A model generated the notes under the pieces. The model was not told where the DNA came from, did not search any database, and saw only the letters and a program-made list of their open reading frames with translations. From Ylistrum balloti (lineage: Eukaryota): a stretch of 64,000 bases of DNA. The stretch covers positions 496,001 through 560,000 of the forward strand of contig NW_026782874.1 of NCBI RefSeq assembly GCF_031769215.1. Direction: 5' to 3'. A program made the translations under genes and the position numbers. Below, piece after piece: positions 8,101 to 32,727 of this stretch. Every line of letters begins with the position of its first letter. The stretch's first letter is position 1.

Positions 8101-9611
8101 TTTATATGTTTCATCATTTTTGTATATACATGTATAGCACATATTTTACGAATTCTTGTGTATATTTCCCATTTCAATTATTTACACCAAAAACTGATCC
8201 AACATCTGGTTAAATCATTTCCAATTTTGTAGTAGTCCTCCACACATGGGTTCCTCAAGAATACAAAGTCCAGTTAAAAAAGAACTGGTTCTAAAGATGG
8301 CATATTTGTTGCTGAAACATGTCAGCTTTTGAAGCTTGCTGATATCTTCTAATGGATGTTGTCCACTCGTCTCTACCTTCATCTCATTTCAATTATTTAA
8401 CCAGTTTTTTGTACCTACCCTATAAGACAATACTAAATCCATTTTTGTGAAGTGTTGACTTACCTAGAATGCCTAGATGCTGGCTTATGTTCCTGATGAA
8501 ATCAGTAGTAAACATCGACATTAGGACATTCTCAGGAATGCTGAACTGGTGTCTCACACCACCAACCGACAGCATGCTTGAGGCTTGAGCATACTGCAAA
8601 TGATGCAACTGAATTGTAGTGGAATATCAGCATATCAAAGTCAACCAGAAGTACAAAATTAATACAAATGTTCTATTTAAATAGCAAAGGCCCAGTAGAG
8701 GGCCAACAGATTCCAGGCTCAAAACAAGTGGACAGGCATATTACATCAATAGAAAATATAGTTTATCAGCAGAAGGTATTTCAGGTCTAACTGCAATACA
8801 ATAGCATAAATACTGTAATACAGTTAAATTGGTCTGCTTATTACAAGATACTCTGGTTGTTGCTAATCTTCAAATCATCATAGCAGCGTCTAGTTTTGAC
8901 ATGATAAAGCATGACTAAATATCTCCTTAATGTTTATTTCATAATCTTGATACACATGTCTGTAAGTATGAGTATGTCATCAAATTAATTTGGAAGACCA
9001 TAATTTTGATGAACAAACCAAACAAAATGCCTTTTTCTGTAAGAACAGTTTTAGCCTTTTAATCTAGCAATAAATTATATATTCATACTGGCTATGTTCT
9101 TTATAATTTCCAATCCACACACCTATGAGATGGTCTCCTTTAAAGATATTGCTCAGTCATGTCATTAATTAACAGATTTGTATATTTAATAATGGTAACT
9201 TACACTAGAATCCCGTTCTATGACTGTCACGCTGAGACCTTTGCGGCTTTGTTTCCTGATCCAGAATGCTGCTGCTGAGCCGACCAGTCCCCCACCAATA
9301 ATAGCAATGTCTGATTGCTTTGGAACAAATGTGGAATCACTCTCATTACCTTTACCAATGATTATACCTTTTAAAGCATTTCCTGCACCTGTTCCATGTT
9401 CGGGATGAAGCTCAGACTCATGTGAATATTTGGGAGACTGACTTTTCCTAACGTTGCTGTCTTTTGAGGTAACTTTATTTGTTTTACTGTTGAAGACATC
9501 TTCTCCGTTGGTACACATATAACGTGATACACATGACCAGAACTGTGAGTGATATATCCTGTCCTTTCTCAGCACATTGTTGGTGACTTTCTTGAAAATT
9601 CTGGCTGACAT
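2117..9611 (-). CDS. FOXRED1: FAD-dependent oxidoreductase domain-containing protein 1 (mitochondrial complex I assembly factor), complete, 9 coding exons, 508 aa
   Basis: Exons 9611-9204, 8593-8464, 7165-7066, 6509-6415, 5480-5320, 3773-3628, 3247-3112, 2635-2531, 2362-2117. All are GT-AG, phases are consistent, total 1527 nt. Motifs: Rossmann [104 protein letters not shown]. The basic, hydroxylated N-terminus looks like a mitochondrial presequence. Confidence 0.95.
4830..4925 (-). mobile_element. 5' terminal fragment of a HINE-like (Helentron-associated) element in FOXRED1 intron 5
   Basis: Minus strand reads TTTCAGCTCACCTGAGCCTAAAGGCACATACGAGCTATTG, the same AGCTCACCTG terminal motif as the element at 39835-41555. 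Confidence 0.5.
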
Positions 9612-9779
9612 TATCTTCAATAAAAATAAAGCAAAACATTCCAAATCCAACACTTAAATGTCTTTCACTAGTTAGTCAACACTGAAATGTCTTTAAAAGT
9701 CAATCTTTCTTTTTTTTAAAAAAAAAAAAAAAAAACTAGATCTGCAAGGTAAACTGTATAAACCATTGCCTGCATACTG

Positions 9780-15111: not shown

Positions 15112-18100
15112 TCAGCCGCCGATCTGATTGTCGATAGCCAGACTACCATCGACACACGTGGAGGTGATGGGATCAAAAAAGTCCAGTCCACTGTTGGTAC
15201 ACGACTGCAGGTACATGTGTCCGGTCAGGTCGCATTGGATGTAGTGATGACGGTCACCAAGAACAGGGAAGTACAGCTTCATTTCGCGAATATGGTTCTC
15301 GTCACAGGGCGCTGTGAACACGGGACAGTTTCCACAGAAAGGATATGCTCCAGTCACTGATGGTGTGTAACCAATAGGAAATCCGGCAGTTGGTGACCCT
15401 GGCCCCTGGGCGGAAGGGTTAGTGACTGCAGCTGGCGCCCCGTCACATGCTCCAGGAGCAGCTGTAGGAGGTACAAACGTGTTTGGATTTACGCATGACT
15501 GTGATGATTGTTGAAAGTAGAAATTTGGCGGGTTACACTGACGTTGGAACGATTCATGCCAGAGGTCACACTGAATGTACATAGTTGGGTCACATGGGTA
15601 CGTGTACAGTAACGGATCGTCCGGGGCTCTCATACGACAAGGATTAGCAAAGTTTGAGGGGACGATACAGGTCAACTCATGTTGGTCCCATTCTTCTCCC
15701 TGAGGACACGGTCGGACCCACGCTTTGCCCCACACGTCGCAATGGATGTACTTGGTCACATCAGACGGATAAGTGAAGAAAAACTTATTCGCTAAGATTG
15801 CTTCCACTGAACAAGGATTTGCGAGTGTTGTGGACAGCGGCTTTCCATGAGTAACACAAGGCGTGTCACCTCCAACACATTGCTTACACGCGTCGTAATA
15901 GGATTCATTTTGTGGACACTGTACAACATACAGTTTGCCCTGGTTGTCGCACTCAAGGTACTTGGTAGGCTCATTAGGGTGTGGAAATTTAGTTATTCCG
16001 GCAAGTAGGGTTTCCTTCGTGCAGATGTTGCCATATCCCCAATGTTCTGTTGTATAGAAATAAAATGATACTTTCAGATTCATGAATTTAACTAGAATAT
16101 ATTGTAGCATATCTCATTTAGAATTCAACTTAACCTTATCAGTTACACAAACTGACAATATCATCTGAAAAAGGTTGTTTTCATTCATATTCTATGGTAC
16201 TTCATTCTATCAACGTGTGTCGCAATATTGTAGTAAATAAAGTACTTATAAACAAGTGATAATGACTGAGCATTGTTGAAGACACAGACATAGTTTATAT
16301 TTTCTATTACATCCGTGTTAATTACCTTTGCAGTCATCTGGACACTTGATTTGTACACCATTCTGGTAGCACTTTATCTCTGTAAAAGAAATCATCTTTT
16401 TATCCCTGGTGTCAAAAACACTCCCTCTTGAACAGAAAATATCTAGATTATTTTGTAACGTACTTGTCAGACAAAATAAGATACGTAAATTATTCGTATA
16501 TGGTTAGTGTATAAAACAATGAAATTTCCCGTCCGTTCGTTTATACACACAAATATAACTATATGATAAACGATTAAATACTATTTTGCGGCGTTACCAT
16601 GGTCACGATGGTCTCCAGTGTACGGCGTCACATTGATGCTACAACCTCTGGTCCCATTGGTCAGTTTGAGTGCATCCTCTAGACTCATGAAGAGTGTCTG
16701 GGTAGTGGTGGTATTTCGGAACTTGATTCCTAGTTCGGCAGCCTCGGTTTGAGAGATCGTTTCGTAGTAAGAATTTCCGGGGAATGGAGTTCCGAAGGCC
16801 GTGAATAATGTTATTTTACCGCAGGTCACGTTAGTCTGCATACACAGAACAGAAAATATGTACCGGTGTTGTTCAGTATGTATTAACATAACATAAACAG
16901 CAAGAAGTCAACCAACAGCAATCTTGTCTTCTTTTTTCATTTCAATAGAAAAAAATTGTATTATGTGATTGAAATTTAAATTAATGCGACTTTACCTCCA
17001 CTGTAACACCTCCTGGTGGCGTAATGACAGCAAGTGAAGGACACTCCTCCATCACACATGTGTAGGTGTGGTTCATTTTAATATATAAGGGAGCTGTTAA
17101 ATATAACCAAAATGATAATAACAGTATTACATTAAAAAGAAATACTGACATGTACACCAAATCAAACTCCAATCAAGAGCGTTATATAAAACAGGGAAAT
17201 GAGAATAAAACCAGAGAATCCGGAATTTTTTTCAACTTTTTATATTCCCCCGTATAGTCAAGTAAGGCATAGTCCAAAAGGTTAGCAAATGAAATCTGGT
17301 GTAAGACAATGCTACCATTCAGCATACATGTCAGCCATGGACACATTCATTTCAAGGTATTTCAATGAGAAAATGCTTTTGGTAAAAAAACTATTCTATT
17401 ATTTTTGTGTGAGATACATAAATTAAAGTTAACGATTGTAGTTACTGTCTATTTTCTGACATATACAGAACTGGCCATTCAACCAACAAATACTAATCGG
17501 CACAATCTAGATAGGCCTTACCTTTACAGGTCTTCTCTTGGATCTCTTGTTTCAGCGCCGTCAGGTCGGTGAAACCTGACACCGTCATCACGTGTGTACA
17601 GGATGGACTCGTGGCTATGGTGTTGAGCTCGGCGTGATTGATATGGCTGCCTACCCCAATTGTGAAAGTGACAATATTATTGGCGTGTATTGCCTCAGCA
17701 GAATGCATAGTGTTCAGCCGGTCATTGGATACACCGTCTGTAATCACGATAAGGACCTTCACCGCATCCGCCCGGCTTCCATGGGAATTCTGAAAAGCAC
17801 ATGTTTACCCATATAAGGCTTTTGTTAACGGTTGACTTTGGTACTTGTTCAAGTCTTCTAACCTCTCTAACCAACCGACGGTCAAGAGTGAACGGCCAAA
17901 ACCATGGCAGTGACTATTGCTGAATAACCAAGGTTAGGCAGATTTATTGAATATCATTTCAGTTTATATTGCATAGGCTCTGATTGTACGTTTTTCTAAA
18001 GATACTTAAAGTTACATATGTATAACACAAATTACAAAAATTCAAGAACAAAGCTTTCAAGTGCGTGCGTATACACATGCATAACATAATAACGGGATAG

Positions 18101-19709
18101 TACAGAAACTGTACTTTACCAACAATACCATTTGCTGAGGTAGAGGCGGTATTAAGTATTATGAATCAACATATATCGTGTACTGCTCTGAAGATTCAGG
18201 CACAGACATTATTGTGAGCATTAATCTCGCGAAATGTTCTAGTTATTGCAGTAAGAGATTACCAATGTATTTCGCATATGCATGTTGGTTTACATTGCAA
18301 GTGAAAATACGGTAAGGACAAACATTATTAATGTGAAATATAGAAACAATGGGAAAATGTATTTATAAACAAACTACCTACCTGGAAGACGTCCGTCAGT
18401 GCTTTGTTGAGTGCTTCGTCTGTGGCAGTAGTACCGCTATCGAAGGGTATATTGTCTATAGCTGTGGACACGTCACTTTTGCTGCCGTATGTGTTCAGAT
18501 AAAACCGCGTTACAGCATGTGTTGAGTACGTCACCATAGCGACCCTGGTTTTGTCTGGAGACACCGGAAAGTCATTGACGATGTCCTGAATGAACATTTT
18601 TGATCTTATGTTGTCGTCTAGTGATAAACTGTTTGACTGATCCATGACAAATACCAGGTCGATCTTCTTTGTGTTTGAACATCCTACGGCAGAAAAAAAT
18701 AATACCAAGTATTCTATGTGATAAACAGAATATTTTCAATTACAAATGACATTTGATTAAGCGCAACATCGGTTCGGAACATTATATGACGTGTTTCATT
18801 ACAGAGTCTGTAAAGCGACTGGTCTCAATATTTAACTTTATGGGGAACACACAAACGTACCCGCTATCCCTAACAGCAATCCCAAACAAACATTATTTTT
18901 CTAACAGAACAAACATAATTATCTCTATGGTGGACATGTGCTCGGTTTACCTTCGGCTAGGAGTTCGGCTAGATTAGTGAAGTTGTTTCCACCCATACTC
19001 AGAAAATAGTTGGAAAAAAACTGAGCCTGGTCCTCGACCCGCCAGCCCACTCCTCCGTGTATCTTTGTATAGAGAGCGGCAGCTATTCCAGAGTACAGTG
19101 GCTTCCTCAGATCCACCCAGTTTACCGCACCCCAGTCTATGTTGAACTTCTCGGCAAGCAGGTCATACTCCTTGAGCAGCTGATTACTGTATTTCGTTTC
19201 CAGGAATTTAGCAAGGCTTAACTAAAACAAAAATCAGGAACACTAAGTTCAAGTCTCGTCTGTCTAGGAAATAAATGAAGGTATTCCTTTAAAAAAAGAT
19301 ACAATACTTTCGATATTCTATTTGAAGGCTGTAATCTAGTAGGGTTTTCATGATAATCTTTGAGATTTACAATTTTGAAGATTGTCAAAACAGCTGTTAT
19401 TTCGTTTAATTTCGGAAAAGAAAAATGATAAATTGTATTATATCTTGTTTTCTTGCCAACCTGCCATATGCCACCATCAAAACCAGGACGGTACGTCTTT
19501 GGGTCCGTTCCGTCATATGATTGGACGTATGCAAGTCGTCTTAGGAAGCCTTTGTCGTCCGCATACAGGCAAGACTCCCGGATCCTGGAGACAACAGCCT
19601 CCACCACATGGGCGCCGTTACCCCCGGGCTGTGTCGTTTGGTCTAACCCGAAGGTACCAATTATCACCCCAACACAAACTACTGACACACATACTCCTAT
19701 AACATTCAT
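15112..19709 (-). CDS. Gene A: secreted lysozyme-like domain (Glu>Gln) + VWA + beta-rich domain + 4 chitin-binding-type repeats (Pif97/BMSP-like), 8 exons, 804 aa
   Basis: Exons 19709-19461, 19221-18951, 18683-18382, 17789-17522, 17093-16996, 16835-16598, 16379-16326, 16046-15112. All are GT-AG and in phase, total 2415 nt. Hydrophobic leader MNVIGVCVSVVCVGVIIGTFG. VWA has DLVFVMDQSNS, TAT and VITDG. Four repeats of the form C..(F/Y)P(H/Y)P..Y(I/L)xCD..G......CP..(W/F/Y)......C. AATAAA at 14942-14937. Confidence 0.9.
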
Positions 19710-22545
19710 CGCGGCAAATGAATTAAGAAACAATGTGAAGTAAACGTATGTTATTTCTTATCAAAAACTTCCTGGTAAAGTGCGTCTGTGGATTGCCATA
19801 TTCACTGCATAGGCGACAAAGGAAACAATAGGTTTGGCACGAGTCGGTTTATCTTATGTATGACTGAGTCGCGTGCATGCATTATAGTGATCGTATTTGT
19901 TTATGAGCTTTATTTCAATATATCAGTAAATCACGCTACAGATGAACTGTACTTATATGAGTCATGCATGTTATGTCATTTTTGAAAAAAAAAATTAAAT
20001 AGATTATTTATATATACCTTTTTCTGCTATAAGTTTTAAGTTTTAACCATCTTATATCACTACATGTATCATAGACAGCTGAAAGTAATGAAACAGTTTT
20101 TTTTTAATTCTAGCCAAGCCAATTTTCAATTTATTCAAAGAGAAACATTGAACGTTTATTTCATAAAATTGTATATCAAATCCCTTTTATGCAATATATT
20201 ATAGAACATATTCATTATGTATCTTATGTAGTAAATCTCCTTATAATGTATAAGATAGTCATTTGCTTTACAGGAACATTAGATATATTATGAATTTCAT
20301 GTTTTTAATACACATTATCGTGTGAAATATACTTTACACTACTTTATATTTCCCTCGGTCCCCACCCCAACCTTAGGTCTCAGTGTTGTAGGCCAATCCC
20401 ATCCTTAAAGAGTCTTAGAAGGGCAAAACAAATGCACACAGCTGTTTAATTATTTGGCTGTAGTGTATCCAATTTGATATTTGTATTGAAAGGAGCTATC
20501 AATCTCTGCATCTTTTGTATAATCTTCGAACAATTTTAATATGACGTTCGACTTATTCGACGATCTATCAACTTGTAAATTTGTTGTTGTTGTTCCGATT
20601 CTTAACTCAATTTTATAATGTGACAAGGCTACTAAACAAAGTATCATTGCTGATGTCGTCGAAGAAGTAAGGAGAAACGTATCCTCCCTTAACACGTGAG
20701 TTTTCTTTCTTTTTCTCTGTATGTGATCTCCGTATAGTCACAATACCTTTGTTCATGCCTTACTCTCTTGTTAGGAATTTTAGTTTATTGCTACGGTTTT
20801 GTCAATATGTTAGTTATTTTGTGTTGTGAATTTTTTTCATGATAATCTGGCGGTATCATTTTATGATAAGAAAATATAATGATAAAAGCAATTTCCGATG
20901 TGTATTTGTAAATCTACATTTAGCATTAAAGATAAGATAACGGATTCTACATGTGAAGCCATTGGCTGTATTTGTAAGCAGAGAAACCATTCTCGATGAA
21001 TAAATGAGAACATGATGCTAACTTCCATGGATTACTAGTAATTGTCGATCAGTAAAACATATTCTTTCACAGAAGGTTTACAGACCTTCGATTTTAAACT
21101 AACGGTTATACTTTGTGAAATTTCTATAATTATTTTACATATATGTGTAACTACTTTCGGGAACTAATATTCCTCACTATCAAACATCTTGCAAAATGGC
21201 AGACTTTTTCTACTACAGAAATGACCTTTCGAAGGACGATTATACTGATAGTAACCTGTTCGTTCCAAGGTAATACGTTTTGCGCGTGATGACGTGTGTA
21301 GTTTTAATACTATGTAAGGCTTTATCTTGATAGACTAGCCCGCCTATAATAAGGTATTGTACTTACTGTTAGTCACGTAATAGTGACACTGATTATGTAC
21401 AGACTTAAAACAGATCAGCGTGAAATGTTTACTTTTTATGTATCATTTAGTCTTATTCTTAAATAAACAAATACTGGTGAATTCATCTAGAAAAGTACCA
21501 GGGATCAGCGCAGGAAAAGCTGTGCACTTTCATAGTTGCATGTTTGGCAGACTTATTTCGTTTATGCAATGAGAGTTGCACATTGTGATAAAACAAAGGC
21601 CGTCTTACGTTTCGCACAGACTCACGTAAATGATATAACGATTTTGTGGGGAAGACTATCATACATTTCCCGTTAAGTTTTAAAGTTTTATAACTCATAT
21701 GCTATGAAATAAGCACGACTTCGATAAGCACATAATTTACAACCTTCGAAGGAAATCAGATGAAAATAAAAAGAATAGTTTACTTTATAGGTTTCGTTAA
21801 TTAATACCAAACAGTTATGACTTTTACTACAGTTTTTCTTATACGTAGCAGGATTACGAAATATAATTGAAAGTATAGTACGAACTATCTAAATAGTTTT
21901 GTGATATGGCAATGATATTAGGGAAAAAACGAACAATCATTCATAGATTATTTATATTGAGTGTATAATCTGTTTCGTTTATTTTCAATTTTAATCAAGA
22001 TGTTTTAACTGTTGTTGTTTTCCTGTAATTTTCAAAGGGAATTTGAAAGAAAATTGAGCGATTATCATATTTCATTCAGAGTATAGTTCAAAGGTCGATT
22101 GAGCTTTAATTACAGGAAGTTGATGGAAAATATGCTCATGTTTTTTTATCTTCTTAACTTCAGTTCGATTTTGCCTTATCTTGTGTTACATGGAGTTCAA
22201 TATCTTTAAATATAGAAGCATAGATATCTTCAACGTTCAAGCCATAAGTGAAACACGCATTATGTTGTAAAAAAGGTTTATTACTTACAATTAATTTACT
22301 TAATAATTCAATATCTATCTAATACTGAAATACGTTTTTCTATGCCACATCTTTGATATTTCTTTGTTGTTGTTATCAGATGTAAAAGTTAAATACATTT
22401 GTCACAAAGATGCCTCTGAGTCTTCAGATACGTAACAACAGTGTGTTGTGTTCCAGATCTCGATTGGTGTCTACAAAACCAGATCTCTTAGAGACAAGTA
22501 AATAACATTTTCGCCAATAGTCTATGACTCAAAGATATCAAATTC

Positions 22546-24962
22546 TTATTTTTTGCCTACTACTGGGACGGGAACAGTGCTCATGACGAAAAGGCCCCTT
22601 GGCACGCAGTTGAGGATGTCTTGGCGCCAAATGAAGTATGGTTTGCAAATTTTCTCGAAAGCATCTCCGTACTGGTCACAGTGAATATACTTCTGGGGAT
22701 CGCTGGGGTGAGGATAGAAGAAAAGGTCAGGAACGGTTCCACAAGGCTTACTGTTAGATCCAAATGCGCCCTTTGTTGGGTCAACAACTACCTCTCTGTA
22801 GAGGCAGGTTAGAGTGGCCTGGTCCCAGAAGTGATGAGGTTCGCAGAACTTCACCACAGCTACGTATGGAAGGTTATAACATTCAATATAGGCCTGATCA
22901 TCGTTAGGATAGGGAAAGAAAAAGAGTCCATTGAGAATATTTTCTGGTGTACACGGATTGCCAGTCTGAACTACAGCGTTCGTAGGTCTTGGTGTAACTG
23001 ATGGCAGAGGGGTCATAGTGGTTCTGGGAAGGGTGAAGGTCATCGGCATACCCGGTATGCACGTCTGTGCCTGTAGGTCAAATATTTCCATAAATGGACA
23101 TAAAACTTCAAACACATTACCATTGCCATCACAGTAAAGGAATCGGTCGTTTCTCAATGGATGAGGAAAGATCTGGATGCCGCTGCTTGAACAGGGGTTG
23201 GGGGCTGTAAATAAAAATACATGACATGGATTATGTAGGCCAATTTGTTAGACATTCAAGTATCTGTCTTGTCTATACATGATTGTACGCCCATTTCATC
23301 AATATTGTCGGTTACGCGAGAACTTAGACGTTCACGTTATTCAGAAATGGAGCATACATTTTGTATTTCTATATATCCTCGATGAAAATGTACCATCAAG
23401 CGCGATATTCGTCTGCATTATAAGTTAATTGAAAGGGTTAGTTAATTTTGATAGAAATGCATTATTTGATAAAGAAAATATTAAAATTATTAGATTCTCT
23501 ACGTCTTTTCGCTTCTTTCGAACCATACGCTGCTTTCTTTCAGTTATTGATATATGTACATTTCGAAAATTATTTAAAGGTATGTCTTCATCTATCAATT
23601 CATTATAGTATAGGGTATATACCAGGTGGTACTTACAGTATGGAGTAGGCACAACCATGTACTGACTACCGAAAAGAGTTTGAGCCGAGCAGTTGACAAT
23701 GATCCTTCCAGCTTCTATACACAGCAGGTTATTATCTACAAATTTAAAGTTTGTTTTGTTTTATTTGAACAATGTCTATTAGTTCATCTTGACTTTATCA
23801 CACACATATAACAACTGTCAAATATGACGCCAGTAGATGTCTAACATTATCACAAACAACGTAGTGCTCATTATTCGATTCTGGCTAAATCGCATAAAAC
23901 GCTTCTTTTACTTGTGGTACTATGATACATATAAAGCTGTCTTTAACTTCTAGATATGTAACTATGACACATATAAAGCTGTATCTAACTTCTAGATATG
24001 TAACTATGACACATATAAAGCTGTATCTAACTTCTAGATATGTAACTATGACACATATAAAGCTGTGTCTAACTTCTAGATATGTAACTATGACACATAT
24101 AAAGCTGTCTTTAACTTCTAGATATGTGACTATGACACATATAAAGCTGTATCTAACTTCTAGATATGTAACTATGACACATATAAAGCTGTATCTAACT
24201 TCTAGATATGTAACTATGACACATATAAAGCTGTCTTTAACTTCTAGATATGTAACTATGACACATATAAAGATGTCTTTAAATTCTAGATATGTAACTA
24301 TGACACATATAAAGCTGTATTTAACTTCTAGATATGTAACTTCATATAGATATGTAACTATGACACATATAAAGCTGTATCTAACTATGACACATATAAA
24401 GCTGTCTTTAACTTCTAGATATGTAACTATGACACATATAAAGCTGTCTTTAACTTCTAGATATGTAACTATGACACATATAAAGCTGTCTTTAACTTCT
24501 AGATATGTAACTATGACACATATAAAACTGTCTTTAACTTCTAGATATGTGACTATGACACATATAAAGCTGTATCTAACTTCTAGATATGTAACTATGA
24601 CACATATAAAGCTGTATCTAACTTCTAGATATGTAACTATGACACATATAAAGCTGTATCTAACTTCTAGATATGTAACTATGACACATATAAAGCTGTA
24701 TTTAACTTCTAGATATGTAACTATGACACATAAAAAGCTGTCTTCAACTTCTAGATATCTATGTCACATACAAAGATGTCTTTTACCTAGTTGTTAATAT
24801 CTAACTTTATTACATAAAAAGCTGTGTTCTTGTTGTGAATCCAAACTACATATCTGTCAGAACAAGAGTGTGTACTCTGGGCTCTGGTCTCGACAATATC
24901 ACTTTATGCGCTTTATGGAGGGACAATATCACTAACAATGATTCAATGATGTAATATGAATA

Positions 24963-24999
<37 letters not shown>

Positions 25000-27900
25000 C
25001 TATTAATATATATAAGGAATGTATTGAAGTGGTGACTGCTTTTAACAGAGACACCTTTTACGATGTGCATTGAAAAGTAAATCTTCAAGGTTTTCGTTGA
25101 TGACACATATTATCTGCCATACGTCATTGGTAACTAGCATTCCATCCAGCAAACTATATCGTTGTCCATGTTATTCCGCTTATTCCTTTCTTAATTACAT
25201 TTCAATGAAGGAAATTAGGATTTAATTCAGCCTCACTCTTATATTGAATACTGATAGCCTCACCGCCAGTCATACACTTACATGGTCTGATGTTGTTTCC
25301 TTCCTCTACAGTGATGTTAAAGTTCCCGGCACAAGTCTTTGTGGGATAAGTGGACATAACTGCCAAAGCCACTGACCGGTTACCACGGACATAAAACGAC
25401 TGTCCAGCGTTGATGTCGGCAATTTTGTAGAACTCATTCAATACGGGACTTGGATTTGCTGACGTCAGAGATCCAAACACGGACACAGTACCATCAGTAG
25501 GGGTGACCTAAGATAAAATTATTTCCAAGATTATGAAAATTCACCATTTGCATGACATTTTAATATTTAGCTATTGTCTTCGTTATTCATCTCGACATTT
25601 ATTTTATTGCGCTATGATATGCAATGTATTTAGAATGTAAATATTGTAACGTAGTAATTGTATCAGTAGAATTTACCTGGGACAGTGTTGTAATGATCTG
25701 AATAATCAAAGACAATTACAGACATAACAGTTGATCATGCTGTAATGTTTGGTCCTATTAGGACGATGACAGGTATCATAACGTTAAACGTTGTTCCTGT
25801 TGTTACTTTTGCCTCTAAATGAACAATGATCAATTTCCTATCGTTACAGTTGATGTCATTATGCTTGGTTCTATACGGACAATAACTGGTATCCTGCAGT
25901 TACAGTTGTTCCTCATGCTATGTTTAGTACTATAAAGACAATATCTGTCTATTTACTGTGAACCAACAGGACAACAACCGGTGGCCTATCGCGACGTTAA
26001 TCCTTCTGTATTGTTTTGTGCCATTAGTACAATAACCCGTGATTTACCGCGACAGTGATTCCTGGTGTATTGTTTTGTGCCATTAGTACAATAACCGGTG
26101 GCCTATCGCGACAGTGATTCCTGGTGTATTGTTTTGTGCCATTAGTACAATAACCGGTGGCCTATCGCGACAGTGATTCCTGGTGTATTGTTTTGTGCCA
26201 TTAGCACAATAACCCGTGATTTACCGTGACAGTGATTCCTGGTGTATTGTTTTGTGTGGTTAGGACAATAACTGGTGGCCTATCGCGACAGTGATTCCTG
26301 ATGTATTGTTTTGTGCCATTAGGACAATAACCCGTGACCTACCGTGACAGTGGTCCCTGCTGTAACGTTGGGTAGGATCTGTACGTTGATGTCACTGCCA
26401 CAGTTATACTGGTAGTTGTTTGGAGTCAAAATAGCAGCAGCTTTAACATTAGAACATTTAAAGTGAAAGTATCAATCATTATTTGGAATAATTTGAAATT
26501 TCGGGTTTAAGAATGTATTCATTTGTCAATCACTTTGCACAAATTATTTTCATTTTTGCGCTTCCGTTTTTTATTATGATAATCTTACTATCAATATCCG
26601 TCATGTCGTGGCCTTTTCATTTTGTCATGTTACGTAAAGTAATGCCTTGTTCTAGTCGTGTCATAGCGATAACGATTTCAGTTCCGAGAGGATTTGATCT
26701 AACGTTTTAGACAGGTACAGAGTGTCCAAACCAGTACATATTTCATTATTTTAAGGTCAAACTCATTATAACACTCCATGTTAAATTAGCAGCAACTTTT
26801 ATTTCAATCATCACAAGTTTCTTTGTCATTTATATCACATTATTTCTCTATGGATTTGATACAACATAAATAGGTTATCGTACTTTACGAGTTGGTCCGT
26901 ATTATATAATTAAAGCCAAGTCCATGGTAACCGTTACTTCCTATAGAGAGTTAAAGAAAAAAACGTATTGGAATGGAAGACTATCCCAAATTACCGACGT
27001 ATTCATTCATTCCTCTTCCTATCGATTAACTCAATGCACTAAGATATAGAATTCCAATCCACTCTACTTGTTATCTGTTTTGCCATATAATGTTAAATGC
27101 ATTTCAATTTTTTTCGAACTTTTCTACCACAGACATAACATTTCACAAATATTAATTCTAAACATATCACACTCATCATAAAAATTTTTCACATCATGCT
27201 GTCTTAGGGTGTTTAGTTAGAAAACCTGTTCATCTGATATTCAAGATATATTCCTATTTTCAGTAATCGTCATATAGTTCATTTTCACCGAGTTAATGTT
27301 TTTCTTACCTTTGCATGAAACACTCTGGATCTGAGTTTTTAGACTGTCTAGATCAGCGTAGCTGTTTAAGATCTGCGAGTGAGTACAGCTTGGACTACTT
27401 GCAATCCCGTCTAATTCGATCTGTAAGCAAGTGCGTTATGTATTAAAGAATAGTTCCAACTAAAACTACCGACGATGCTTTCTTCTTCCATATAATTAAT
27501 AATTTATTTAGTTAATTAGAACCATTGTCGATGCAGTACTATATACTGGGATAATTTCACCCCAGGTTATTTTCGCCAAAGTACCACACAGTCTCGCCTC
27601 GTGTTTATTTCGTCCCCGAGGATTATATAAAAAAAATTATACAAATGGAATATATTTTAAAGTCGCCTTTCTTGTTCCTTAGCGAAAAGGGCACAATTCA
27701 AATGGGGGCAAAATGCCCATGTAGAGTATATCATTTTTTATATACATACAACATACACTAAATTGAAATTCACACGTGCATATGATATATCGGAGAAAGA
27801 GATTTACTCTTATTATTCTTTTTTCACTTAATGTACTTTTTTCAAATACTACAACATGAAGTAAATAAAACCTTTCTATTCCATATAAACATGTTACCAA

Positions 27901-30900
27901 AGAGGTTAAAACATGTTACCAAAGATGTTAAGAATCGTCTACCTTGTTGACATACTGTGTGACTCCCAGCGTAAATATGGTAATACCACTCAGCCTGGCG
28001 TTGTTAGCAGCATTCAGTGTGTTTACCGTATTTTCTGATCGACCATCAGTGATCAAAATCATAACCTGTATAAGAATATCAGTATACAATATTCAGAGAA
28101 ACCTATATTTTCCTGATTTGTTTTATCACAGACATTGATTATATGTTATTTTTCAATTCTTTCTAAAAACCAACACTTCATTTTCTCTTCGTCTTTTGAC
28201 ATCTCTTCTTACTATAGTTGTACCGTTATAGTGAAATATGTCTTACAGCGATGATAGTCAATGTATTAGAAACATACTGCAGGACAATGTATTCCTTGCA
28301 TTATGTTTGATTTAAGCTAAGACACTTCTTCATATATATATATAATTAATATCGCCAAGTATATGCTTTCATTCCGCTGACAGGGTTGGCAGTGATGTGA
28401 GAAAACATATTACAAATGCTGTATTGCTTCTGAACGTGATATGATAAGGGAAAGAATTATATGGAGGGAAAATCGGGGGTTTTTTCTCTTTTTTTTTTTT
28501 TTTTTGTAAAACATGTCCTCTATCAGTTAAGTCTACTTGTAAGCTTTTTGGTTGTTGGAGTTGAATTAAATTTCCTATAAAACATCAAGAAAATACCAAT
28601 ATGTCAACATAATCATGATGTAAAATCAGTTCCATTATAACTAAGACAGAACAATAAAAAAGAGGATTTCTTTTTTTTCCCTTTCTTCGAGATTATTAAA
28701 AGTCGTCAGAAGGATCAGATTGTAATATTCTGGTATGAGATACTACCTTGGCCGCACCATTCCGTGCACCGTTGACTGTTGCGAAGACTTCATTAACGGT
28801 TTTATCAATGGCGGCAGCAGTGTTGGTACCGCCTGGGCTGTATATAATACCATCTACCGCCTTCTTCACTGCATCTTTTGTGTCGAATTGGTTCAGCAGG
28901 AACGAGGCCGAAACAGCTGTACTAAATTCCACCACGGCCACACGAGCAGTCTGTGGTCCGATATCAAACTGGTCGACTACATCCTTTACAAATTGCTTTG
29001 TGATATCAAAATCGGATGGAGAAAGACTTGCTGAGCTGTCCACAACAAAAACCAAGTCAATAGCATTGGTGCTGCGGCATCCTAGAAATAAGATAAAACA
29101 TGTCATTACTTTTGTTTAGGAAAACGAAGATTTGATAAATATTTGAAACTTATTACATACAAAAATGCCTATATATAAACTAATTTCATTATGATGTCAT
29201 TTGCTTACGTAACGGACTGTCTACGGTCTCTTGGTTAAAAGATATGCCTGTTACGCTGGTTTACTTGGTGACTCTTTTGTTGTTAATCGTGTCGTTGTTT
29301 GGGAACGTGATATTATTTACTAGGATTTAACAAGATTTACTTAACGATGACGTTGATTACGGAAATGAAGCTAACTCATATTCTCATCCATTTTTCAAAA
29401 TCATTGTAAATCTTCTTTTGGCAATATTTTGTCTCCATTTCATCGATTTCGATTTTGAATTATGATCATGTTGGCATTTCTGCATTTATCAACTGATATC
29501 AAACAAGATAATAAAAATGGTTGTAATGGTATGCAGAGGTAGTATGGCACAGCTATGCCTCGGAAAAATAAATTACACATATGTATCGAATCTTGTTTGT
29601 TTTTTTTGTTAAAAAAGAGTGACTGATAGCTTACCTCCTTGTAACTCATTGACTGCTTTGTAGTATTTGTTGGCGTCGAAAATAGTGTGTTTTGTGGTGT
29701 TAATCCAGAAAGAACTCTGTTTTTCTACGGAACTGGGGAGGACACCCGATCCAGACTTGAGAAGCGTATAGAGAGCGGCGGCCACACCAGAATACAGAGG
29801 TTTTCTTAAGTCTTCCCATTTAGCTGATGACCAATCGATTGTCAATGTGTTCCTAAGGAGAGCTCTGGCTGTGGCCAACATTACAGCTGACTGTGTCTGT
29901 TTAAACTGGTCCTCATCAATCTGTTAAAATATATATAAACATGAAAAAGAAAGAAAGCAAACAATGAAGGACTTAAAGATAGAAATAGAAAAATTGATAA
30001 GAAAAGGAAAGAACGAAATCTGAAAGACATTTGTCCGTTTTGCTAATGTTTCTATTGAATCGCTGTAAAAGAAAGAAATGAGGTAAAACTATTTAAATTT
30101 TAGTGTCTTGTTCGAATCTGAGAGTTATCCATTCTTTGAGGAGAATGAGTAAACTGAAAGAAAATGCACCGGCTGATAGTTACTTTCATTCTCAATGAAT
30201 GTATAGCAACATCAATACTTTTATTTCGTTTTGAGTAATATGTCGTTAAAAAATTCCAAACGGAAATGGACTTTCACGTGCTACCGTGTTACTGTCTAAG
30301 GTCTGCGGTAAATGGACTTCCACGTGTTACTGTCTAAGGTCTGCGGTAAATGGACTTCCACGTGTTACTGTCTAAAGTCTACGGTAAATGGACTTCCACG
30401 TGTTACTGTCTAAAGTCTACGATAAATGGACTTCCACGTGTTACTGTCTAAAGTCTACGGTAAATGGACTTCCACATGTCACTGTCTGAGGTCTACGGTA
30501 AATGGACTTCCATGTGTTACTGTCTGAGGTCTACGGTGAATGGGCTTCCACGTGTTACTGTCTAAGGTCTACGATAAATGGACTTCCACGTGTTACTGTC
30601 TAAAGTCTACGGTAAATGGACTTCCACATGTCACTGTCTAAGGTCTACGGTAAATGGACTTCCATGTGTCACTGTCTGAGGTCTACGGTAAATGGACTTC
30701 CACGTGTCACTGTCTGAGGTCTACGGTAAATGGACTTCCACGTGTTACTGTCTGAGGTCTACGGTAAATGGACTTCCACGTGTTACTGTCTAAAGTCTAC
30801 GGTAAATGGACTTCCACGTGTCACTGTCTGAGGTCTACGGTAAATGGACTTCCACGTGTCACTGTCTGAGGTCTACGGTAAATGGACTTCCACGTGTCAC

Positions 30901-32727
30901 TGTCTGAGGTCTACGGTAAATGGACTTCCACGTGTTACTGTCTAAAGTCTACGGTAAATGGACTTCCACGTGTCACTGTCTGAGGTCTACGGTAAATGGA
31001 CTTCCACGTGTCACTGTCTGAGGTCTACGGTAAATGGACTTCCACGTGTCACTGTCTGAGGTCTACGGTAAATGGACTTCCACGTGTTACTGTCTAAAGT
31101 CTACGGTAAATGGACTTCCACGTGTCACTGTCTGAGGTCTACGGTAAATGGACTTCCACGTGTCACTGTCTGAGGTCTACGGTAAATGGACTTCCACGTG
31201 TTATTGTATAAAGTCTACAGTAAATGGACTTCCACGTGTTACTGTCTAAAGTCTACGGTAAATGGACTTCCACGTGTTACTGTCTAAGGTCTACGGTAAA
31301 TGGACTTCCACGTGTTACTGTCTAAGGTCTACGATAAATGGACTTCCACGTGTTACTGTCTAAGGTCTACGGTAAATGGACTTCCACGTGTTACTGTCTA
31401 AGGTCTACGGTAAATGGACTTCCACGTGTCACTCTCTAAGGTCTACGGTAAATGGACTTCCACGTGTTACTGTCTGAGGTCTACGGTAAATGGACTTCCA
31501 CGTGTTACTGTCTAAGGTCTAAGCATGGCACTGAACATTTTGAGACGAGTTGTGTGGCACTCTTGGTCATTGTATAGATTACACAACGTAACGTAAGGAT
31601 TGCTTGCCTGAAACTCGTAGCCGAACGAGAAAATACCTATATGTGAGCATAATCTCATAAACCAAACTCAAATTCAATAAAACTAGGGCAATATATGAAC
31701 AAAGAAAATAATATCACGGAGACTGCAGAAAGAGTGCAATTAGAATAAGACCTGCATCTCTTGAAACCCCGTGTCAGTCAGCTGATGACATCTTTCATGA
31801 AATGCTGGCACCATTCCGCATGGTAGAAGTATGAAATTGGGCTTTACAGCTATTGCACGTCCATAAGTACAATTCTAGTTAGTGTTAAATCAAAAGGTTA
31901 TTGATCAGCGATACTCCACTGTAACTGCCTTGTTGAAATAATTGTTTAAACAGTTACATTTGCTATCATTGGTATCAGATAGGATGGTACAAAATGGAAC
32001 ACATCTTAATGTCTTTCTAGGGTTAGGTATATGTACGCTGGTAAGATATGGTAATATAGCGCAAGAACGTCTCTTAAGCTCGATCGATTGAGCATCAGAC
32101 GTGTAAGCAAGGGGTCTCGGGTTCGAATCCTAGCGTAGGCATTGAAATAAATATTGAGGCAAATAATTATTTAAACTATATGATACAGTTGTTTTGTCCT
32201 TCTAGAACTCGTTAGTGATGCTTAGGGTGTACATTTTGAAGCCAATCAGGCGATTGAGAAAAATCCAAAGTGATCGAAAGAAAAGTCAACATCTAGACGG
32301 TGAGGTATACTAGCCCAACAATTCATAATTCAATAAGTTTCGTTTTTACATGTTTTATAAATAGTATTTTTCTATTGATGAAACATGCTAGATTTGAACT
32401 TTACATTTCCAAAACGCAGCAAAGGGATATATATCTGTAATATATACAGTAAATGTCATTTCCATCCTGTGACGGCTAACTCACCTGCCATATTCCACCA
32501 TTGTAGCCTACTCTGTAGGTATCGTTTGCTGTGCCGTCCTGGGACTCGACGTAAGCCAACCTGCGAAGATACAGTCTGTCGTTGGGGAATATGCAAGATT
32601 CATGGATGAGGTTGATGACAGCCTCTACCACGGCAGAACCGCTTGCTCCAGGGACTCGTGTTTGATCCTGCATCTGGCCACTACACAGATACGCCAGTCC
32701 CAAAATCAAAAATGTTCTTGAAATCAT
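22546..32727 (-). CDS. Gene B: secreted lysozyme-like domain (catalytic-type Glu retained) + VWA + beta-rich domain + 3 chitin-binding-type repeats, paralog of gene A, 9 exons, 726 aa
   Basis: Exons 32727-32485, 29920-29635, 29081-28747, 28065-27943, 27420-27309, 26440-26343, 25507-25282, 23735-23637, 23204-22546. All are GT-AG and in phase, total 2181 nt. Signal peptide MISRTFLILGLAYLCSG. VWA has DLVFVVDSSAS, GGTNT and LITDG. It shares LRRLAYV(E/Q)S.DG, GGIWQ, DLRKPLYSG.AAALY and SP.SCTH with gene A. AATAAA at 22282-22277. Confidence 0.9.
23920..24790. repeat. 42-bp minisatellite, about 20 copies, in gene B intron 7
   Basis: Unit TATGACACATATAAAGCTGTATCTAACTTCTAGATATGTAAC. It produces the repetitive 291-aa ORF (YVTMTHIKLYLTSR)n. 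Confidence 0.97.
24964..24994. repeat. (TA)n microsatellite
   Basis: Direct TA run. Confidence 0.9.
25968..26360. repeat. 59-bp minisatellite (about 6.5 copies) overlapping the 3' end and splice donor of gene B exon 6
   Basis: Successive 60-nt lines repeat with a 1-nt shift (period 59). The last unit overlaps exon bases 26343-26360. Confidence 0.93.
30261..31521. repeat. 38-bp minisatellite, about 33 copies, in gene B intron 1
   Basis: Unit CGGTAAATGGACTTCCACGTGTTACTGTCTAAGGTCTA (CGGTAAA at 30306 and 30344). Confidence 0.97.
32069..32141 (+). pseudogene. Degenerate tRNA-like sequence (tRNA pseudogene or SINE head, Thr-UGU-like)
   Basis: A-box-like AGCTCGATCGATTGAGC, B-box GGTTCGAATCC at 32120-32130 and TGT at the anticodon position. 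The anticodon and acceptor stems do not pair properly. Confidence 0.55.

Follow-up and report, generated by a model that had tools for sequence, protein, structure and literature searches.

A lysozyme-like N-terminal domain with phage relatives is predicted for two tandem VWA and chitin-binding proteins of the scallop Ylistrum balloti

Introduction

What is the N-terminal domain that heads two neighbouring chitin-binding proteins of the scallop Ylistrum balloti, and do its two copies still do the same work? The question arises from a 64,000-nucleotide stretch of contig NW_026782874.1 (positions 496,001 to 560,000, hereafter called the window), in which two head-to-tail genes on the minus strand, here termed B and A, encode proteins with a hydrophobic N-terminal signal peptide, a von Willebrand factor A (VWA) domain and a series of chitin-binding repeats (carbohydrate-binding module family 14, CBM14). 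An earlier note on this DNA had described the genes as a candidate new system that pairs a lysozyme-like enzyme (B) with a binding-only pseudo-enzyme (A). The reading that we favour, and hold to be fairly probable, is that B and A are old tandem paralogs of the VWA-CB type whose N-terminal domain (N domain) resembles glycoside hydrolase family 23 (GH23) and SLT enzymes and is related to phage proteins, with B likely cleaving glycans and A likely binding them. The lysozyme superfamily and the VWA-CB proteins are known already. What is new is an unnamed domain family of the lysozyme superfamily, with phage relatives, that forms the N-terminal part of one subfamily of chitin-binding matrix proteins from molluscs and annelids and has there repeatedly lost its predicted catalytic residue.

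The N domain belongs to a widespread family without a name

Pfam gave no match to the first ~175 residues of A and B. A Pfam search with 68 domains of the family likewise assigned them to no family, the one hit being a match of 1/68 to SLT (PF01464) with an E value of 0.012. When 1.84 billion representatives were searched with a profile built from exon 1 of A and B, 711 clusters (formed at 50% identity) matched at E<=1e-3, and the domain occurs in three forms. In the first it heads VWA-CBM14 proteins of ~650-950 aa, as in the present locus. The second and commonest form comprises very many secreted stand-alone proteins of ~190-240 aa without a chitin-binding module, and in the third form two or three copies stand in tandem in one protein. 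The named carriers comprise scallops, Mytilus, Mercenaria, Mya, Saccostrea, Tegillarca and Potamilus, together with Haliotis, Littorina, Patella, Aplysia, Pomacea, Babylonia, Batillaria and Gigantopelta. A complete protein with N domain, VWA and CBM14 was also found in the annelid Owenia fusiformis, and the starfish Acanthaster planci carries the N domain. In their sources the family proteins are all named 'uncharacterized', 'matrilin-like', 'cartilage matrix protein' or 'collagen-like'.

With regard to the tandem form, proteins with repeated N domains and no VWA are represented by P0005/P0154, P0010, P0013 and P0022 from ENA assemblies, by P0134 from Acanthaster planci and by P0122 from Owenia fusiformis. 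On the tree these proteins make up a clade of their own, and the glutamate that is discussed below is kept in most of their copies.

The N domain is predicted to have a lysozyme-like fold

A structure was predicted with AlphaFold2 (AF2) for the Argopecten ortholog of B, whose N domain is 85% identical to that of gene B, from an alignment of the 68 family domains. The resulting model is all-helical, with a predicted local distance difference test score (pLDDT) of 93.8 and a predicted template modelling score (pTM) of 0.90. When it was searched against 48,161 PDB representatives, the top ~50 matches were almost all enzymes of the lysozyme superfamily, with GH23 leading. MltE (Z 9.2), MltC (8.7), phiKZ gp144 (8.7), MltF (8.6), a Ralstonia GH23 chitinase (8.5) and Slt70 (8.4) were among these matches, and the alignments to GH23 structures covered 117-137 residues. 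Lower matches were to GH73, GH19, destabilase, and g-type, c-type and lambda lysozymes. Foldseek also placed the same families first, although weakly (E>1), with the Ralstonia GH23 chitinase at rank 1. In the ESM Atlas the nearest non-self clusters were phage 'hypothetical proteins' at template modelling (TM) scores of 0.78-0.83, followed by SLT-containing clusters, and the language-model neighbours of the domain were SLT, Lysozyme_like and Phage_lysozyme2. The AF2 model, the PDB search, Foldseek and the ESM Atlas are therefore in agreement, and they support the suggestion of the earlier note that the N domain is lysozyme-like, its predicted fold being nearest to GH23/SLT. For the modelled domain it is the uniformity of the match list that carries this call, the Z score itself not being high.

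The resemblance to GH23 lytic transglycosylases and goose-type lysozymes consists of the all-helical lysozyme-like fold, a single predicted acid, and an 'E-S/T' at the end of a helix that is followed ~19 residues later by G-x-hydrophobic-Q (GGIWQ here, GLMQ in SLT). In contrast to these enzymes, the N domain matches neither Pfam SLT nor solved GH23 chains significantly, carries an animal-specific LRRxA before the Glu and a D-G after it, and occurs in animals, fused to VWA and CBM14, with an activity that is a prediction. The third GH23 motif, AYNxG, was not recognisable in the N domain and is not conserved in the phage relatives.

A phage protein family is related to the N domain

By sequence, the route from the N domain to SLT is indirect and leads solely through phage relatives. 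The PHROG family phrog_3108, listed there as of 'unknown function', was matched by 43/68 animal domains, with a best E value of 5.5e-19; the gene B ortholog matched at E 0.01 and the gene A ortholog gave no match, so that membership applies at the level of the family. Comparison of the animal profile with the phage profile by hhalign gave a probability of 99.05% and an E value of 2.1e-18 over 124 columns, and it paired the animal motif Glu with an invariant phage Glu and the Gln of GGIWQ with an invariant phage Gln. We collected 117 bacterial and phage homologs, all of them named 'hypothetical', and aligned 33. The divergent phage members display AAQES.FG ... GP.LG.FQM, which is a typical SLT motif, and some of them match Pfam Phage_lysozyme2 (6.8e-5) or SLT (0.018). 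These profile comparisons support the view that the animal N domain is homologous to phrog_3108, a family of phage lysis cassettes. The two share a size of ~160 aa, both motif residues (Glu and Gln) and homology over nearly the whole domain, at an identity of ~20-35%. They differ in context. The phage genes lie in lysis cassettes, and their products stand alone and are cytoplasmic or depend on a holin; the animal genes contain introns, and their products carry a signal peptide and are, in molluscs, fused to matrix domains.

The genes surrounding phrog_3108 point to a role in lysis. In Klebsiella phage 48ST307 (L005, 5522-7059) the phrog_3108 gene, which is gp54 of the phiKO2 type, lies directly after the gene for a 103-aa holin-like membrane protein. 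It is followed by a gene whose product has one N-terminal membrane segment (i-spanin-like) and by one for a small lipoprotein matching 'Rz-like spanin' (o-spanin-like), all of these lysis genes being located upstream of terminase; phiKO2 has been listed with a two-component spanin (PMC6139136). In Pseudomonas phage PSA28 (L008, 3001-4451) a 165-aa member adjoins Phage_holin_3_3, just before terminase. From this gene order and the motifs we infer that phrog_3108 is an endolysin of the SLT/GH23 kind.

In two different lysis cassettes the family thus fills the endolysin place beside a holin and spanin-like genes. With its SLT-like motif E-T/S ... G-x-x-Q, phrog_3108 could receive the annotation of putative endolysin.

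The phage relatives also bear on the question of substrate. The N domain of B could be a chitin- or chitosan-cleaving enzyme that remodels the chitin matrix of the animal itself and does not attack bacteria. Such a role agrees with the presence of the Ralstonia GH23 chitinase among the best structural matches and with the fusion to CBM14, which puts the domain on chitin. The structural scores, however, do not split this chitinase from the lytic transglycosylases (Z 8.5 vs 9.2), the nearest true homologs are phage lysis-cassette proteins, with peptidoglycan as substrate, and the commonest animal form is a stand-alone secreted protein that has no chitin-binding module. We therefore consider chitin cleavage by B unlikely. 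Bacterial peptidoglycan would be the favoured substrate, because the homologs are phage lysis proteins and because the commonest animal form is small, secreted and Glu-intact.

Phage-related cell-wall hydrolases with introns, duplications and fusions to other domains have been found in bivalve genomes before, namely the GH24 phage-type lysozymes, a co-opted phage lysozyme with demonstrated antibacterial activity (Ren et al. 2017, PMC5303276). Those enzymes are of the T4 type, are restricted to Heterodonta and Palaeoheterodonta and are absent from the pteriomorph oyster genome, whereas the family described here resembles GH23 and has members in scallops, mussels, clams and gastropods as well as in an annelid and a starfish.

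B and A differ at the predicted catalytic position

In the AF2 model the motif L-R-R-L-A-Y-V-E-S closes helix 2, and the invariant G-G-I-W-Q lies 19 residues further on. Gene B has the E-S of the catalytic motif (E61-S62) and an Asp (Asp83) after GGIWQI. Gene A lacks it, having Gln63 at the position of the Glu, and a Ser replaces the Asp after GGIWQ. The Glu/Gln contrast that the earlier note had pointed out is thereby upheld, with the change from Asp to Ser as a second difference. The CAA codon of Gln63 differs from GAG at two bases, and both the Gln and the Ser recur in the Argopecten ortholog of A. Exons 1-2 of A, including the Gln codon, were unchanged in DNA contigs from 4 runs of 2 studies; part of these runs may be those from which the assembly was made.

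The assignment of the Glu is consistent with solved enzymes. Judged by the start points of the structural alignments, it lies at most 1-2 residues from three sites at which, according to the PDB titles, mutants are inactive: E64 (MltE), E503 (Pseudomonas Slt) and E141 (Ralstonia chitinase). These titles give E64Q of MltE and E503Q of Slt as inactive mutants, and one of them describes MltE-E64Q with bound chitopentaose. Moreover, 192/217 near-complete domains of the family have Glu at this position, and Ser or Thr comes next in 216/217. B has an earlier 'ES' (in IHESC), which we rejected as the catalytic motif, since the Argopecten ortholog has QS at this place and the family as a whole does not conserve it.

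An A-type relative in Mercenaria, 46% identical over its full length, has kept Y-V-E-S, which indicates that the Glu-to-Gln change arose on the scallop branch. Between the two scallops the N domain is 82% identical in A and 85% in B, and the VWA domain of A is 86% identical. As the N domain of A is as conserved as that of B and as the VWA domain of A itself, it is being maintained and is not decaying.

The glutamate has been lost repeatedly in VWA fusions

The Glu is kept in 137/140 of the stand-alone proteins and in 27/46 of the VWA fusions. The other 19/46 fused domains have Q, A, V, S, N, I, M, K or L in its place, and on a tree of the N-domain and VWA region this change needs at least 9 events. 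The Glu-less fusions still keep LRR, A, S/T, DG, TYR and GGIW.

These losses raise the question of whether the fused domain is an enzyme at all. Both N domains could be non-catalytic lectins with a lysozyme fold, the Glu of B having a structural or binding role, and the proteins could be structural or adhesive components of a matrix such as the chitin scaffolds of shell, periostracum, gut or mucus. Such an interpretation is favoured by the dispensability of the Glu amid a conserved GGIW, LRR and DG and by the fact that the activity of every family member is predicted, and the VWA-CB family has been described as a scaffold family (PMC6231486). Yet the near-constant Glu of the stand-alone proteins and its presence in all phage relatives make up an enzyme-like pattern, and B together with its relatives in Mytilus, Mercenaria and Owenia keeps both the E-S and the downstream Asp. 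We rate the lectin interpretation of both domains as rather unlikely.

The tree also clarifies the relation between the two scallop genes. It does not join A and B as sister genes: B falls with Mytilus proteins, and A has a long branch to itself inside the same well-supported clade, which indicates an old duplication. An obligate pair of enzyme and pseudo-enzyme, co-expressed and associated through the VWA domains, with A targeting or regulating B, would fit the B-then-A order, which is conserved head to tail in Ylistrum and in Argopecten (same orientation, orthologs 2.6 kb apart). It would fit equally with the conservation of the Gln of A in both scallops and with the metal ion-dependent adhesion site (MIDAS) motif DxSxS, which is kept in both VWA domains. 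However, the duplication is old, the Glu of the Mercenaria relative limits the Glu/Gln contrast to scallops, and other neighbouring genes show other combinations, the adjacent Haliotis asinina genes P0004/P0008 being Glu/Glu and P0077/P0078, which share one contig in Aplysia, both being without Glu. An obligate pair is therefore very unlikely in our judgement. The terms 'candidate new system' and 'enzyme / pseudo-enzyme pair' of the earlier note claim too much.

Gene structures and the join to the VWA domain

The genes were modelled from GT-AG sites, reading-frame phases and alignment to orthologs, in a window of ~35% GC with eukaryotic composition and 0 N runs (Table 1). The introns of both genes are all GT-AG and in frame. 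Alignment to orthologs revealed the short exons 16379-16326 of A and 23735-23637 of B, which are hidden in the list of open reading frames (ORFs), and fixed the donor site that ends exon 7 of B at 25282. The B model is 100% identical (726/726) to the RefSeq 'uncharacterized protein LOC132563474 [Ylistrum balloti]' and 91% identical to Argopecten irradians XP_069121965.1, and the A model is 82% identical, with one gap, to XP_069121966.1 of the same species. The span 15112-32727, taken as the unit in the earlier note, corresponds exactly to the distance from the stop of A to the start of B. The layout that the note had proposed for two head-to-tail paralogs (signal peptide, N domain, VWA, beta-rich region and CBM14) was likewise recovered in the complete models and by Pfam.

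Comparison of stop-free minus-strand segments between 15.1 and 32.7 kb by tblastn showed that the paralogs are co-linear exon by exon, with identities of 60% in N-domain exon 1, 44% in exon 2, 39% in the VWA domain and 31% in the CBM region; the N domains of A and B are 44% identical. The N domain of B is split directly after GGIWQ by an intron of 2564 bp. No third copy of the gene was found in the window by tblastn.

Evidence that the N-domain exons are joined to those of the VWA domain comes from co-linear RefSeq models in many species, including the Ylistrum model identical to B, and from intronless contigs of relatives. Contig L004 (2754 nt) has an intronless ORF of 879 aa across the N domain and VWA, and Logan contigs of 2.5-2.8 kb encode fused proteins of 734-770 aa, one cluster of which includes an Aplysia RefSeq protein. 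Intronless contigs that are barely longer than the coding sequence are most simply explained as spliced transcripts. The join that the earlier note had presumed is supported, indirectly, by gene models and by transcript-sized contigs.

Table 1. Positions of the genes B and A and of their parts in the window.
Feature	Position	Strand	Description
Gene B	32727-22546	-	ATG 32727, stop 22546; 9 exons; 726 aa
Gene B, exons 1-5	32727-32485, 29920-29635, 29081-28747, 28065-27943, 27420-27309	-	
Gene B, exons 6-9	26440-26343, 25507-25282, 23735-23637, 23204-22546	-	
Gene B, N domain	29635..32673	-	aa 19-177; exon 2 and the part of exon 1 behind the signal peptide
Gene B, codon 61	32545..32547	-	GAG, Glu61; predicted catalytic acid
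Gene B, VWA	27309..29081	-	Exons 3-5; Pfam VWA E 3.8e-29; MIDAS DSSAS...T...D intact
Gene B, beta-sandwich and short Cys-containing linker	23637..26440	-	Exons 6-8
Gene B, last exon	22546..23204	-	3 CBM14 (peritrophin-A) and a Thr/Pro linker; Pfam CBM_14 E 1.1e-11
Gene A	19709-15112	-	ATG 19709, stop 15112; 8 exons; 804 aa
Gene A, exons 1-4	19709-19461, 19221-18951, 18683-18382, 17789-17522	-	
Gene A, exons 5-8	17093-16996, 16835-16598, 16379-16326, 16046-15112	-	
Gene A, N domain	18951..19646	-	aa 22-174; exons 1-2, intron placed as in B
Gene A, codon 63	19521..19523	-	CAA, Gln63; at the position of the motif Glu
Gene A, codon 85	19218-19216	-	AGC, Ser85; replaces the Asp after GGIWQ
Gene A, VWA	17522..18683	-	Exons 3-4; Pfam VWA E 4.2e-22 and 1.6e-12; MIDAS DQSNS
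Gene A, beta-sandwich equivalent	17093-16326	-	
Gene A, last exon	15112..16046	-	4 CBM14; Pfam CBM_14 E 1.7e-12

The locus of gene B is longer than that of A chiefly through three intronic minisatellites. One, in intron 1, consists of 32.6 copies of 38 nt (30285-31521), and another, in intron 7, of 20.6 copies of 42 nt (23919-24783), which gives rise to a spurious plus-strand ORF of 291 aa; these two explain much of the size difference between B and A. The third has 6.7 copies of 59 nt (25971-26364), a period that is not a multiple of 3. It begins within exon 6 of B and copies the last 22 nt of that exon together with the GT donor, so that a series of donor-like sites extends into intron 6. 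The genes also differ in the VWA region. The intron by which the domain is split follows ...DVFQ in A and ...NGAAK in B, the site in A being 11 codons further towards the start, and an extra intron in the second half of the domain is present in B and absent from A. Two further minus-strand features of the window seem unrelated to A and B, namely an exon at 9186-9653 with a GGGLVGS FAD/NAD-binding motif (oxidoreductase-like) and a 267-aa ORF at 46671-47474 with a chromodomain-like C-terminal stretch.

The downstream domains and the VWA-CB family

The ~140 residues between VWA and CBM14 form an all-beta jelly-roll in the AF2 model of the ortholog region (pLDDT 89). Its best structural matches were binding domains from many proteins unrelated to one another, among them the collagen-binding/PPC domain of ColG, the SID1 ectodomain and GOLD, at Z 7-8.5, and we read it as a generic beta-sandwich fold that may serve as a spacer or a binding module. 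A likeness to PliG, the inhibitor of g-type lysozyme, was considered (Z 6.2) and rejected, because the collagen-binding, GOLD and SID1 structures outscore it and the likeness is that of jelly-rolls in general. In gene A a Pro/Ala/Gly-rich linker lies ahead of the last CBM14 repeat.

VWA-CB dcp, which comprises Pif- and BMSP-like matrix proteins, is a described molluscan family with VWA and chitin-binding domains (Zhao et al. 2018, PMC6231486). A and B belong to it by its definition, since each combines VWA with peritrophin-A/CBM14 in one secreted protein, and they share with it the signal peptide, the VWA domain, the repeats, the Thr/Pro-rich linkers and the expansion in molluscs with occurrence in other lophotrochozoans. 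They differ from it by the additional enzyme-like domain of ~155 aa, of which no lysozyme-like counterpart at the N-terminus is described in PMC6231486, and by the jelly-roll domain. The architecture is new within a known kind of protein. Our literature searches for lysozyme-like domains with VWA and chitin binding, and for horizontal transfer of lytic transglycosylase genes in bivalves, found no description of the N domain, and those for the ortholog accessions found no mention of them; the backbone of VWA and CBM14, in contrast, is that of the known VWA-CB dcp.

In Pif97 the VWA domain comes directly after the signal peptide. No source names any protein of the present subfamily Pif or BMSP, and the searches made found no shell-proteome record of one. 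Half of the VWA-CB members of Pinctada fucata are not expressed in shell-forming tissue (PMC6231486), and a role in the shell is therefore not a given.

One protein of Argopecten irradians (P0410, 527 aa) has VWA followed by a C-type lectin domain (PF00059) in place of CBM14. In the N domain it shares 96% identity with the B ortholog, and its gene lies on the same chromosome as P0003. Either it arose as a recent paralog, or the gene model is an alternative or chimeric one; the window has no counterpart.

Proposed roles of B and A

According to the reading that we favour, the CBM14 repeats would anchor both proteins on chitin, the VWA domain with its intact MIDAS would bind partner matrix proteins or other ligands, and the beta-sandwich would act as a spacer or as an additional binding module. 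The N domain would then present a groove for a polymer of beta-1,4-linked N-acetylglucosamine (GlcNAc) or N-acetylmuramic acid (MurNAc). As the groove of B keeps Glu61 and Asp83, B is most likely still able to cleave glycan, which would make it an antibacterial lysozyme tethered to a chitinous matrix or, as the alternative, a remodeller of chitin. A, with Gln and Ser in a domain that is otherwise conserved, is most likely a non-catalytic module that binds glycan. By analogy it most likely resembles the E-to-Q mutants of lytic transglycosylases made in the laboratory, which still hold chito-oligosaccharide.

Several points weigh against this reading. The identification of Glu61 as a GH23 acid comes from the motif, the helix position, the ranges of the structural alignments and the alignment of the phage profile, and the endolysin role of the phage family is itself deduced from gene order. 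A Z score of ~9 is middling for an all-helical model, according to the note that accompanies the search tool. A hmmsearch of the N-domain profile against PDB sequences gave 0 matches at E<=10, and hhalign of the family profile with the single sequences of MltE and Slt70 was not significant. Run searches for Ylistrum balloti yielded DNA contigs and no RNA run. Finally, the Glu is lost in 41% of the VWA fusions, and the fused domain may be mainly a binding module even where the Glu is present.

Implications

A broader reading of the family can be proposed tentatively, and we give it somewhat less than even weight. To the c-, g-, i- and GH24 phage types of animal lysozyme the N domain would add another, which is GH23-like, shares ancestry with phage endolysins and is widespread in marine invertebrates (molluscs, annelids and echinoderms). 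Its members would be small secreted enzymes that in lophotrochozoans became fused onto VWA matrix proteins anchored on chitin, where the domain turned into a catalytically dead module for glycan binding at least 9 times. If this is true, scallop A and B would offer a natural contrast of wild type and E-to-Q mutant within one locus.

Should the stand-alone domains and those of the B type prove active, animals would possess an additional lysozyme family, which annotation pipelines leave unnamed. The relationship also gives a putative function to phrog_3108, a family of 'unknown function' in lysis cassettes. Moreover, one subfamily of the VWA-CB proteins, a group regarded as central in chitin-based shell building, gains an enzyme-like head, and this head points to antibacterial protection of chitinous matrices or to their enzymatic remodelling. 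The repeated loss of the Glu, with the rest of the domain kept, provides a natural series for the change from an enzyme to a binding protein.

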